From Podarcis muralis (lineage: Eukaryota), in NCBI RefSeq assembly GCF_964188315.1, contig NC_135655.1, forward strand, positions 68,324,001 through 68,388,000: DNA of 64,000 bases, read 5' to 3'. The translations under genes and the position numbers were made by a program. Below are positions 53,801 through 55,553 of the stretch, piece by piece. Every line of letters begins with the position of its first letter. The first letter of the stretch is position 1. Below the pieces are notes generated by a model, which did not search any database, had not been told where the DNA came from, and was given only the letters and a program-made list of their open reading frames with translations.

Positions 53801-55553
53801 TTAGTTTCCATAGTAGAAAAGTCAAGTACGGTTTTCAACAGTGCACAAAGGCTGGAAGTTGTTAGAAACTGCATCTCTTTTATATTTGAAAATAAAATTT
53901 TGGAGACTGAAAAGGTAATAAAAAATTCTCCTAAACTATTTGAGGAGTACTTCCAAGTTAAACTCATACATGTTAAGTGATTGACCTCTTTACTACTCCT
54001 GCCAGATTGTAGTCCTTTTTCATTTATTCATTGTCCTCTTCAACAAGTATCAGACTGAAAGTACTGAGGTACCAGTTAGGGTGGAGGCAGTGCATGTGAA
54101 TATGTGGATTCCTTTTTACTCTAAATTAAAATTGGAATCTTACCTCACCCTCTTGTTTGCCCCTTCTCTGTTACATTTCTGTACATGGAACCCCTCCCCC
54201 GCAAATCTTCCCTGTTTTTCTTTACCTTATACATAGGTCACTCCTCCACCCACGTAATTTTTCTCCTTTTCCACCTAGTGAACAATTAGGTCCAAACAGT
54301 ATTTCCTGTTTCTCTTCTCCCTGTTCCAGCCCTTCATACCCTCAATGTCTGTCTCCAACTTCAGGTTGGTTGGTTCCCTTAGTTCAAAGCTGGAGACAGA
54401 CTTTGAAGGTATGAAGGGTTGGAACAGGGAGAAGAGAAACAGGAAATACTGTTGTGCAAATAGATTTTTGTTGTGGAAGCAGGCAGGCATCTTTGGATAT
54501 TGCCCTTATTTTATTAATACAAATAAATCAATGTCCTAAAGAACTAAGGGCTGGATCAATTAACCCACTCTACTAGTGGAAGCCAGCACAAGGGCTCCTA
54601 CTGGCACTATTTTCACTTGCCTCCCCCCTGCATACACACCCAAATCTACTCTAGAGGGTCAGGAGAAACTCTAGAAAGAGTGCATAAGGGAAAGAGATGG
54701 GAAATCATTCCACTGGGCAAGCAGAAATGCTTCTGATGAAGAACGGTCTCCCTAGCACAATGTTGAATTCCACCTTCAGTCATATGACCACTTATACAAC
54801 ATCTTTAAAGTCTGTGGAAAGAGTAGTGCTTTTCACACATTCATTAAAACCTACAAGACTGAGCACTGCCATGTCTCAGTATGTTGCATACTCCTTAACT
54901 TTTGAGACCACAACCAAGAAGTTACTTCTCTAAGCCCCCACATTTCATTCAGTTTTATAATTTAGCATGAAAATGTTGTTCGGTTAGGAAATAGGAATAC
55001 AGTGGTACCTTGGTTCTAGAACGTAATCCATTCTGGAAGTCCGTTCGACTTCCAAAACATTCGAAAACCAAGCTGCGGCTTCCGATTGGCTGCAGGAGCT
55101 TCCTTCACTCAAGCAGAAGCTGCATCAGACATTCGGCTTCCGAAAAACATTCAAAAACTGGAACACTTACTTCCAGGTTTTGGTGTCCAGGAGCCGATTT
55201 GTTCATCAACTAAGCCATTCGAGAACCAAGGTTCTACTGTATATGAAAATCTGGGAGAGTTTAAACCTATCACTAGCTTAAATGTTGATCGTTTAGAGAC
55301 TTTGTTGATTTGGTTTACTTTATTTACAAATAACCCAAGTATTAGTAAAGAACTCAATTAAACTAATGTTTTGTGGAATTGGAATACATTTTTCTCTATA
55401 TAGACTCTGCCTGCTGCACTGAGAGCCCTAAAAGGAAAAGCAGCACGGCAATGTTTGACACAGGAACTAAGCCTACATGTTCAGCAAAATCGAGCTATAC
55501 TGGATCATCAGCAGTTCGATTACATTGTACGGATGATGAACTGTACTTTGCAG
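2670..55553 (+). CDS. SBF2: SBF2/MTMR13 (SET-binding factor 2), partial multi-exon CDS: 14 exons, 1710 nt, 570 codons, DENN module and following region
   Basis: Exon translations match SBF2 as I recall it ([24 protein letters not shown]; [23 protein letters not shown]; [24 protein letters not shown]) and differ from SBF1 at diagnostic positions. All splice sites are AG/GT and the phases join without a stop. Confidence 0.97.
3078..3215 (+). mobile_element. CR1 LINE 3' end or CR1-tailed SINE fragment
   Basis: gcattgcagggggttggactagatgacc...cccttccaa...ttctatg tail, shared with other copies in the window. Confidence 0.75.
4404..4451. repeat. (GT)24 microsatellite
   Basis: Perfect dinucleotide run. 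Confidence 0.97.
4811..5158 (+). repeat. Copy 1 of an old duplicated segment (copy 2 at about 6699-8218, interrupted)
   Basis: Shared blocks include ataatgcag.ttgtaataat, attaaagc.gtctgattctt, ttcagtttgggaatttcaggaattgttgcctgca and aacattaaaatgaagca. Confidence 0.85.
6868..7317 (-). mobile_element. Solo LTR (450 bp), antisense to SBF2
   Basis: TG...CA termini (TGTTA/TGACA); 5-bp TSD CATAT at 6863-6867 and 7318-7322; AATAAA on the minus strand (plus-strand tttatt near 6933); CpG-rich. Confidence 0.85.
7333..7995 (+). mobile_element. 5'-truncated L2-clade LINE with (TTA)n tail
   Basis: RT C-terminal peptide [14 protein letters not shown]...[20 protein letters not shown] (ORF 7353..7589); TTAATTC at 7326-7332 and 7996-8002 is a probable TSD. 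Confidence 0.9.
11510..11700 (-). mobile_element. Old L2 LINE fragment
   Basis: Reverse strand reads attactacaatgtggtctatgtggg, a degenerate DYCNALYVG motif of L2 RT. Confidence 0.55.
11791..11907 (-). mobile_element. tRNA-derived CR1-tailed SINE (Squam3-like), partial
   Basis: gaatcatagaatcgtagagttggaa tail on the plus strand plus a degenerate tRNA B-box region; similar to 32088-32240. Confidence 0.7.
11911..11980. repeat. Compound microsatellite (TC)16(TG)12(AG)7
   Basis: Read directly from the sequence. Confidence 0.95.
12915..13885 (+). mobile_element. Degenerate CR1 LINE 3' portion, interrupted by a younger antisense CR1 end
   Basis: CR1 RT-like text (gtacaattctggtc..cacctcaaaaagg; cagtttagagaaaag..gataagagg) and the 3' UTR motif ccactgtgaagacaaaatgttgg...gatgggcctttggcc. 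Confidence 0.6.
13559..13705 (-). mobile_element. CR1 3' end fragment
   Basis: catagaatcatagaattgcagagttggaag...ccctgcaatgcaggaat. Confidence 0.75.
14277..14680 (-). mobile_element. CR1 LINE 3' fragment
   Basis: ORF 14461..14706 encodes [31 protein letters not shown], a CR1 ORF2 C-terminus; the CR1 tail lies near 14280. Confidence 0.88.
15456..15917. mobile_element. BovB (RTE) LINE fragment with internal inversion
   Basis: Plus strand 15610-15917 encodes [16 protein letters not shown]...WCWRRLLRV...YFGHLMRRE; minus strand 15605-15456 encodes the immediately following [28 protein letters not shown]. Confidence 0.93.
17283..17332. repeat. (CT)25 microsatellite
   Basis: Read directly from the sequence. 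Confidence 0.95.
17444..17685. mobile_element. Tc1/mariner (Tigger/pogo-like) MITE
   Basis: Perfect 18-bp TIR CAGTGGTACCTCAGGTTA; TA TSD on both sides. Confidence 0.9.
18379..18393 (-). promoter_or_regulatory. Candidate CTCF site (CCAGTAGGTGGCACT)
   Basis: Matches the CTCF core consensus CC(A/G)(C/G)(C/T)AG(A/G)(G/T)GGC(A/G)(C/G)T; motif evidence only. Confidence 0.4.
18536..18675 (+). mobile_element. Penelope-like retroelement terminus with a degenerate hammerhead motif
   Basis: atCTGAAGAagtatgcatgcacacAAAAgctcatacc...ggtctctaaggtgctactgg...agaccaacacggctacc; same family as the element at 21019. Confidence 0.75.
21019..21200. mobile_element. Young Penelope-like insertion: inverted partial pseudo-LTR followed by the 3' end
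   Basis: Perfect 59-bp inverted repeat (21015-21073 / 21088-21146); 14-bp TSD AAATTGCATGGTAG at 21005-21018 and 21201-21214. Confidence 0.85.
21359..21472 (+). CDS. SBF2: SBF2 exon 4 (114 nt, 0-0): [38 protein letters not shown]
   Basis: ttcaaag|GGATCA ... TTCAGG|gtaaag; lies within ORF 21332..21526. Confidence 0.95.
22760..23720 (-). mobile_element. Degenerate L2 LINE reverse-transcriptase fragment
   Basis: Minus strand carries relics of the GFRPG and LSAAFD.IDH motifs and [27 protein letters not shown] (ORF 23193..23423). Confidence 0.75.
23923..24033 (+). CDS. SBF2: SBF2 exon 5 (111 nt, 0-0): [37 protein letters not shown]
   Basis: ttttag|GCTTGC ... TCACAG|gtaaat. Confidence 0.96.
25881..26242 (-). 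mobile_element. Full-length Sauria SINE (Squam1 type)
   Basis: ACCTTT-type tail (plus-strand aaggtaaagg); Pol III A box TGGCGCTGTGG and B box AGTTCGAATCCC on the minus strand; 14-bp TSD GCAGCTGCTGCTAA at 25867-25880 and 26243-26256. Confidence 0.93.
26644..26749 (+). CDS. SBF2: SBF2 exon 6 (106 nt, 0-1): [35 protein letters not shown](G)
   Basis: ctacag|AAGCTG ... CAATTAG|gtatgt. Confidence 0.96.
32088..32240 (+). mobile_element. tRNA-derived CR1-tailed SINE (Squam3-like)
   Basis: A box tagttcagttgg, degenerate B box, CR1-type tail. Confidence 0.8.
33707..33924. mobile_element. Tc1/mariner MITE, same family as 17444
   Basis: CAGTGGTAC...GAGGTACCACTG termini, TA TSD, interior highly similar to 17444-17685. 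Confidence 0.9.
34340..34812. mobile_element. Tc1/mariner non-autonomous element
   Basis: TIRs ctgtattggcccgaatataagccgcac / gtgcggcttataatcgggccaatatga showing CpG decay; TA TSD; internal direct repeat ccaggagc.cgg..aagtggtgcccgccc. Confidence 0.82.
35558..35915 (-). mobile_element. L2 LINE 3' end with (TTA)n tail
   Basis: (TTA)n at about 35558-35604 followed by the reverse-strand L2 3' region. Confidence 0.8.
36064..36275 (+). mobile_element. Sauria SINE internal fragment
   Basis: gtgcaagtagataaatagg...gctggccacatgacc...ccggctccctcggcc, reverse-homologous to the SINE at 25881. Confidence 0.8.
37603..37690. mobile_element. Short palindromic MITE-like element (related relics at about 5390-5462 and 46483-46557)
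   Basis: caatcctatacat...aagccc...gggctt...acaggattg forms an imperfect foldback. Confidence 0.5.
38219..38598 (+). mobile_element. Helitron/Helentron-like non-autonomous element (HINE-like)
   Basis: Starts taactag, contains repeated gccaaatt motifs and a subterminal cagacggacagaca microsatellite, ends tagat; family call from pattern recall. Confidence 0.45.
40941..41090 (-). mobile_element. tRNA-derived CR1-tailed SINE (Squam3-like)
   Basis: catagaatcataagattgcagagttggaa...ccctgcaatgcagg...accaaccttctggttaacagc. Confidence 0.78.
41675..41990. mobile_element. Possible PIF/Harbinger-like MITE
   Basis: Imperfect TIRs agggcaggccc / agggctggcccc; TSD not confirmed. Confidence 0.35.
42652..42784 (+). 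CDS. SBF2: SBF2 exon 7 (133 nt, 1-2): (G)[43 protein letters not shown](S)
   Basis: tgtaaag|GAATTC ... AAATATAG|gtaagc; core DENN sequence. Confidence 0.96.
43457..43574 (-). mobile_element. Old Penelope-like terminus (second family)
   Basis: Minus strand reads gcatCTGATAAagtggactgtagtccatGAAGgctt...agactaacagagctacccc. Confidence 0.6.
44211..44319 (+). CDS. SBF2: SBF2 exon 8 (109 nt, 2-0): [36 protein letters not shown]
   Basis: cccccag|TTACCC ... GAACTT|gtgagt; DENN YIPILP...PTPFIIG motif. Confidence 0.97.
44874..45470. mobile_element. Solo LTR (597 bp), older
   Basis: TGTTG...CAACA termini; flanks TGGTT and CAGTT are consistent with a CpG-decayed CGGTT TSD; internal repeats (ttcaggttccaa twice, (AAGCC)3). 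Confidence 0.6.
45593..45706 (+). CDS. SBF2: SBF2 exon 9 (114 nt, 0-0): [38 protein letters not shown]
   Basis: ctttcag|TTAGAT ... TCTCTA|gtaagt. Confidence 0.96.
46212..46289 (+). CDS. SBF2: SBF2 exon 10 (78 nt, 0-0): [26 protein letters not shown]
   Basis: ttgtag|GTTTTA ... ATGTTG|gtaaga. Confidence 0.95.
46729..46800 (-). mobile_element. CR1-tail SINE/LINE 3' fragment
   Basis: gaatcaaagaatgatagagtcggaagggaccctgag..catctagtccaaccc. Confidence 0.7.
47437..47550 (+). CDS. SBF2: SBF2 exon 11 (114 nt, 0-0): [38 protein letters not shown]
   Basis: tcacag|GATAAA ... CACAAG|gtaaaa; dDENN sequence. Confidence 0.96.
48650..48778 (+). CDS. SBF2: SBF2 exon 12 (129 nt, 0-0): [43 protein letters not shown]
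   Basis: ccacag|GCAGCC ... GATGAG|gtagaa. Confidence 0.97.
48893..49085 (-). mobile_element. tRNA-derived, L2-tailed SINE (MIR/Squam2-like)
   Basis: Minus strand has A box tggtgtagtggtt and B box ggttcaaatcc; L2-type tail (plus-strand tttataccccacctt). Confidence 0.7.
49780..50140 (+). mobile_element. L2 LINE 3' end with (ATA)n tail
   Basis: ggaccttttctgtggtgactccc...gtggaat and ctgccccgtgatcctcggatgaaaggcagtataga, followed by (ATA)n at about 50098-50140. Confidence 0.75.
50319..50417 (+). CDS. SBF2: SBF2 exon 13 (99 nt, 0-0): [33 protein letters not shown]
   Basis: ctttaag|TTGGTA ... AAAAAT|gtaagt. Confidence 0.96.
52376..52580 (+). CDS. SBF2: SBF2 exon 14 (205 nt, 0-1): [68 protein letters not shown](V)
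   Basis: ttcag|GAGAAT ... CCTGTTG|gtaaga. Confidence 0.97.
53805..53914 (+). CDS. SBF2: SBF2 exon 15 (110 nt, 1-0): (V)[36 protein letters not shown]
   Basis: tttgttag|TTTCCA ... GAAAAG|gtaata. Confidence 0.96.
54295..54453. repeat. 67-bp inverted repeat (63/67 identical) with a 25-nt loop
   Basis: Arms 54295-54361 and 54387-54453; the opposite-strand ORFs 54275..54490 and 54345..54539 share [16 protein letters not shown]. Confidence 0.95.
55000..55239. mobile_element. Tc1/mariner MITE (CAGTGGTACCT TIR group)
   Basis: CAGTGGTACCTTGGTTCT...AGAACCAAGGTTCTACTG termini, TA TSD. Confidence 0.85.
55404..55553 (+). CDS. SBF2: SBF2 exon 16 (150 nt, 0-0): [50 protein letters not shown]
   Basis: tatag|ACTCTG ... 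TTGCAG|gtactt. Confidence 0.96.

Follow-up and report, generated by a model that had tools for sequence, protein, structure and literature searches.

Introduction

A long hairpin in an intron of the SBF2 gene of the lizard Podarcis muralis raises two questions: how it came into existence, and whether the RNA transcribed from it has any function. The hairpin, which has 159 nucleotides (nt) and is built by two arms of 67 nt each, is found in intron 15 of SBF2, within a stretch of 64,000 nt of the forward strand (RefSeq assembly GCF_964188315.1, contig NC_135655.1, positions 68,324,001 to 68,388,000), which is called here the window and whose internal numbering is used throughout. An original prediction, made from the sequence alone, offered two readings of this element: a fold-back (template-switch) duplication, or a hairpin RNA such as the precursor of a microRNA (miRNA), a source of endogenous small interfering RNA (siRNA) or a substrate of ADAR enzymes. 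The first reading is now the better supported of the two, by the continuity of base composition between one arm and its flank, by the lack of a convincing target-site duplication (TSD) and by a layout of the type called '3-2-1-4' in the template-switch literature. The second finds no positive support in the Rfam matches, in the length of the stem or in the pairing of the antisense strand. With a probability of about 0.55, the hairpin is a single-locus inverted duplication, which arose at the DNA level by a template switch during replication and which is inert except for the double-stranded RNA that it would form in the intron.

Structure and position of the hairpin

The two arms are complementary at 63 of 67 positions (94%) in a base-by-base comparison, with perfect pairing over the outer 34 bp and a loop of 25 nt, and all these measurements reproduce those of the original prediction. 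The four differences between the arms are 54329G/54419T, 54341C/54407A, 54346T/54402T and 54358A/54390C. In the sense RNA the first of them makes a G-U pair and the other three are mismatches, which again agrees with what had been described, and in the antisense RNA the same four differences make two G-U pairs and two mismatches. The fold energy, which had been proposed as a check, is -114.8 kcal/mol for the sense RNA, while shuffled sequences reach -46.5 +/- 4.2 kcal/mol (n = 200, z = -16.2) and none of them folds as well. The antisense RNA is more stable than the sense RNA, at -121.2 kcal/mol, and the single-stranded DNA of the hairpin folds with -68.8 kcal/mol (z = -17). Among the inverted repeats of the window this one is the longest, and it is real and well past chance expectation.

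Exons 15 and 16 of SBF2 were placed by their matches to the Pfam family SBF2 and by their splice sites, and intron 15 therefore extends from 53915 to 55403, with 1,489 nt. The exons were searched against Pfam singly, with no spliced model joined. The hairpin is located on the sense strand of this intron, 950 nt ahead of the acceptor and 380 nt past the donor; the latter distance had been claimed before and holds with the end of exon 15 at 53914, as given by the Pfam match. Five open reading frames (ORFs) around the hairpin have no match in an exact look-up in a protein collection, and a word search with the ORF of exon 16 returns only three distant fragments, one of them from a carp.

Base composition of the arms and flanks

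Base composition is the most informative clue to the origin of the hairpin, and it makes good evidence, not proof. The left arm is pyrimidine-rich and the right arm purine-rich, as had been noticed from the sequence, with pyrimidine fractions of 0.75 and 0.27, while the mean of the window is 0.51 (standard deviation 0.05). The tract directly upstream of the left arm is also rich in pyrimidines, and a flank as rich as this one occurs at 0.25% of the window positions when 185 nt are considered, at 0.16% for 150 nt and at 0.8% for 100 nt. The right arm is a purine-rich island, and directly after it the composition is ordinary (0.47-0.52). The left arm gives the impression of closing a native pyrimidine-rich tract of about 250 nt, and the right arm that of an island foreign to the intron. 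The random insertion of a finished palindrome is disfavoured because the flank is matched in composition on one side only, and a fold-back copy of local sequence is therefore favoured over a ready-made palindrome.

A proposed template switch of the '3-2-1-4' type

In the proposed mechanism, the nascent strand would copy the native pyrimidine-rich intron through 54295-54361 and continue to about 54386. It would then fold back or jump to the opposite strand, and the sequence from 54361 back to 54295 would be copied as a reverse complement, which would be the segment 54387-54453 of today, before synthesis returned to the original template at 54454. With switch point 3 at 54295, 2 at 54361, 1 at 54386 and 4 at 54454, one '3-2-1-4' event would account for the entire structure, and the four substitutions would have been gained by the arms after the event. 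The right arm is, at 63 of 67 positions, the reverse complement of nearby sequence of the same strand across a spacer of 25 nt, which is what a template switch is expected to leave.

The '3-2-1-4' layout is one of the types which the four-point model distinguishes among template switches; a single step of this type makes an inverted repeat, and the type represents 31% of the events called with high confidence between human and chimpanzee (Loytynoja and Goldman 2017, PMC5453318). Template switches yield perfect hairpins at once, with more than 6,000 hairpins in the primate lineage, and the miRNA loci tied to them are mostly found in introns of host genes, mainly on the sense strand (PMC10710096). 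The hairpin of SBF2 is similar to '3-2-1-4' events (PMC5453318; for hairpins, PMC8794818 and PMC10710096) in having a reverse-complement copy and a short spacer. It also shares with template-switch hairpins (PMC8794818, PMC10710096) the intronic position, the sense strand and probably a perfect hairpin at birth, and no perfect TSD is seen at its flanks, where the best match in register is 4/5. It differs in the copied piece, which has 67 bp here, whereas the 'miRNA-like' stems have 30-55 bases (PMC10710096).

The arms now differ by 6% (four substitutions), and because of this the event is probably old and the duplication probably fixed in the species, although any date from four substitutions would be very rough. 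The pattern of these substitutions suggests a DNA palindrome in neutral decay rather than the upkeep of an RNA stem, because the antisense strand pairs and folds better than the sense strand. To our knowledge, no template-switch events have been catalogued in lizards.

Several points weigh against a single template switch. The ancestral state, in which the left arm would be present and the right arm absent, is read from composition alone, and the composition test was picked after the data had been seen. The copy-number evidence covers the 64-kb window: neither arm has a second copy there, nor do the 850 nt of surrounding sequence, and of a family with about 1,000 copies only 0.04 would be expected in 64 kb, if a genome of about 1.5 Gb is assumed. 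A scan of metagenomes for a 24-mer of the arm gives no match, as expected, and is uninformative. At the putative switch points no microhomology is visible, a check that is uninformative. Compared with the short template switches reported from primates, 67 bp is long. The inverted repeat starts with CAGT and ends with ACTG, like the ends of Tc1/pogo elements, and its flanks hold one imperfect match in register (GTCCA/GTGCA, 4/5) and another off register (GTCCAAA/GTGCAAA, 6/7), which could be a decayed TSD.

The distribution of the four arm differences is a further point of this kind, as the inner 33 bp contain all of them and the outer 34 bp none (P = C(33,4)/C(67,4) = 0.053), which hints at a more complex history in two steps. 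In such a history an older and imperfect inner repeat of 33 bp (29/33) would later have been extended outward by a second template switch, which would have produced the perfect outer 34 bp. A report on yeast promoters describes that template switching between imperfect arms homogenises and expands inverted repeats (PMC13100816), in line with this history. With four events only, however, the clustering is not significant, and one event with random decay after it would account for the data just as well. An origin of the hairpin in two steps is rather doubtful.

An artefact of the assembly, such as the fold-back chimera of a long read, is the most improbable explanation. Palindromic chimeras do occur in long-read data, but an artefactual fold-back would be perfect, while this hairpin has four arm differences and an asymmetric spacer of 25 nt. 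Furthermore, of the words sampled from the surrounding 2 kb, 82-94% are present in 14 sequencing runs from five studies, recorded as DNA or with the type unrecorded, a figure in which the words of the hairpin are not singled out.

Flank repeats and a possible transposon origin

The other way of obtaining such a structure is transposition. The hairpin could be a copy or a relic of a palindromic non-autonomous DNA transposon, that is a miniature inverted-repeat transposable element (MITE), or it could be the fold-back at the end of a larger repeat to which the pyrimidine-rich tract also belongs, and in both cases many copies would be present in the genome. A search for TSDs was carried out over all boundaries within +/-6 nt of the arms and for duplication lengths of 2-10 bp. 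It found no perfect TSD of 5-10 bp at any of these boundaries, only one-off matches, and no TA, TTAA or 8-bp duplication in register, the flanks being AA/TT and not TA/TA. For perfect duplications this bears out the earlier statement that a TSD or TA flank is absent, with a best in-register match of 4/5. Exact flank matches of 2-4 bp exist, all of them off register, and are read as chance. The 4/5 and 6/7 matches are also within chance, given the many comparisons made, yet they keep the transposon reading alive.

A near direct repeat (8/10) is also observed between GTCCAAACAG at 54290-54299, which extends into the beginning of the left arm, and GTGCAAATAG at 54454-54463, directly after the right arm; it is probably due to chance, given the number of registers examined.

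The CAGT...ACTG ends and the imperfect flank matches would suit a MITE, and a TA-flanked MITE is found 540 nt downstream in the same intron. This MITE and the palindromic MITEs of this lizard genome are, like the hairpin, short, non-coding and hairpin-forming, with CAGT...ACTG ends. The hairpin of intron 15 differs from them in that neither TA nor another clean TSD, nor any sequence likeness or second copy, is seen, and in that one of its arms matches the composition of the flank. A perfect in-register TSD is lacking although the arms are only 6% diverged, and the insertion would have had to hit precisely the border of a tract that is found at 0.2-1% of positions, and to do so in the right polarity. 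Its arms are low-complexity polypyrimidine, which is unlike typical transposase-binding ends, and they resemble no other repeat in the window; the earlier observation that the hairpin is not similar to the MITEs or Penelope ends of the window thus stands in the window comparison. An origin as a MITE is unlikely on this evidence, and it retains some weight.

Two more specific identities were considered and abandoned. A hammerhead/Penelope palindrome was rejected, as no hammerhead match is obtained at E-values up to 10 and the rest of the window shows no likeness to the hairpin. A likeness of the flanks to the ends of mariner elements of the Made1 type was dropped, as the window contains neither a matching second end nor another copy.

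Possible functions of the RNA

Whatever its origin, the hairpin could be a working RNA gene, that is a young precursor of a miRNA or of hairpin-siRNA, which would be expressed together with SBF2 and cut by Drosha, Dicer or both into RNAs of about 22 nt. The position on the sense strand of an intron should lead to transcription each time SBF2 is expressed, the fold is highly stable with a loop of 25 nt, and new miRNAs are documented to arise from intronic hairpins of template-switch origin (PMC10710096). The evidence on the other side starts with Rfam, in which no miRNA family reaches its threshold, in agreement with the earlier remark that no conserved miRNA was recognised in it. With 56.9 bits the best match, MIR6426, stays below its gathering score of 96; on the opposite strand the score is 56.0 bits, and the other matches are weaker. 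These matches are to plant families built from long perfect hairpins and are nearly equal on both strands, and they reflect shape, not kinship. A known miRNA family was rejected as the identity of the hairpin, all Rfam matches being generic and below threshold.

The length of the stem also stands against this function. Primary miRNA transcripts (pri-miRNAs) strongly prefer a stem of 35 bp, and the window for 'miRNA-like' hairpins is 30-55 bases (PMC10710096). In a pri-miRNA, a stem of about 35 bp stands between a single-stranded basal junction and an apical loop that has at least 10 nt, whereas the hairpin of SBF2 has a stem of at least 67 bp and a loop of 25 nt. Like a canonical animal pri-miRNA, it forms a stem-loop in an intron, its loop exceeds 10 nt and it is predicted to be transcribed with its host gene. 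It differs in its stem, which is about twice the preferred length, in lacking a single-stranded basal junction at a suitable distance and in having no family match. According to the rules of Drosha and the Microprocessor, one cut lies at a distance of about 13 bp to the basal junction and the other at one of about 22 bp to the loop; in a stem of 67 bp, the cuts set from the base and from the loop would fall about 32 bp apart. Human mir-548 is a family of pri-miRNA hairpins derived from MITEs.

The substitutions of the arms keep the sense pairing no better than the antisense pairing, and none of the 20 listed sequencing runs that contain the stretch, all from one organism, is on record as RNA, which is weak evidence; four raw RNA runs are listed besides these, and no small-RNA run. 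A working hairpin RNA, be it a pre-miRNA, a source of endo-siRNA or an ADAR substrate, has no positive support and is unsupported, not refuted; as an RNA gene in its own right the hairpin is very improbable.

The fate predicted for the transcribed hairpin is simpler. The pre-mRNA of SBF2 would fold into a duplex of about 67 bp, would undergo promiscuous adenosine-to-inosine (A-to-I) editing by ADAR and would then be degraded with the excised intron. Editing of this kind is what is generally expected of ADAR enzymes on long intronic duplexes, and an intramolecular duplex of 67 bp in the sense strand of SBF2 intron 15 would be a suitable substrate as a prediction only. Inverted-repeat substrates of ADAR in introns, such as the inverted Alu pairs of primates, likewise form long and nearly perfect intramolecular duplexes in the pre-mRNA, but they are made by two repeat copies, whereas a single short local duplication is found here. 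The hairpin is most likely neutral for SBF2.

Splice-site look-alikes in the stem

A strong look-alike of a 3' splice site is present in the left arm, where 18 of 20 positions are pyrimidines and CAG comes next (AG at 54328-54329). In the right arm there is a look-alike of a 5' splice site, with GT at 54409-54410 in the context AAG/GTATGA, where the slash marks the exon border. The two would bound a pseudo-exon of 79 nt (54330-54408), which shifts the frame and carries stops, and a second possible donor at 54365 (CAG/GTTGGT) would give a pseudo-exon of 35 nt. Both the acceptor and the donor look-alikes are buried in the stem, where they are paired with each other.

In a more elaborate proposal, a template switch in a lacertid ancestor would have made, in a single step, a long co-transcribed hairpin that is processed to small RNAs, as a newborn miRNA or hairpin-siRNA, or a stem that hides the splice pair and so controls a poison exon of 79 nt at 54330-54408. 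We hold this proposal to be quite remote.

Other hairpin elements in the window

The only other strong hairpin in the window is a palindrome at 21015-21146, which has perfect arms of 59 bp and a spacer of 14 nt and has no sequence relation to the hairpin of intron 15. The MITE of intron 15 holds three internal copies of AAAACATTCGAAAAC, and an end at 33840-33926 shares its first 12 bases with this MITE. The features discussed are listed in Table 1.

Table 1. Coordinates of the hairpin of SBF2 intron 15 and of neighbouring features (positions in the window).
Feature	Position	Strand	Pyrimidine fraction	Description
SBF2 exon 15	53817-53914	+		Acceptor at 53813 or 53816; donor GT at 53915; Pfam PF12335 SBF2, E 9.7e-12, profile 13-42
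Pyrimidine-rich tract	54110-54294	+	0.70	185 nt directly upstream of left arm; taken as native intron sequence
Left arm	54295-54361	+	0.75	63/67 against right arm; putative source copy, switch point 3 to switch point 2
Spacer / apical loop	54362-54386	+		25 nt; putative native sequence between switch points 2 and 1
Right arm	54387-54453	+	0.27	Putative reverse-complement copy of left arm
MITE	54997-55242			246 bp, TA flanks, same intron; 25-nt terminal inverted repeats (22/25) starting CAGTGGTACCTTGGTTCT
SBF2 exon 16	55404-55553	+		Phase 0; clean AG and GT borders; Pfam PF12335 SBF2, E 9.1e-15, profile 60-92

Significance

As it stands, the hairpin is one inert-looking inverted duplication with no demonstrated product or effect, which has little weight beyond annotation, and it is probably an ordinary and inert one. 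For annotation, the consequences are that it should not be recorded as a miRNA and that it may break short-read assemblies. If it acted through small RNAs or through the poison exon, it would be a dated case from a non-mammal in which an element that regulates a gene arose by template switching. If the origin by template switch is true, the intron of SBF2 would hold a clean and unusually long (67-bp) birth of a hairpin in one step in a reptile, and hairpins of this origin are the raw material of new miRNAs, as shown in primates.

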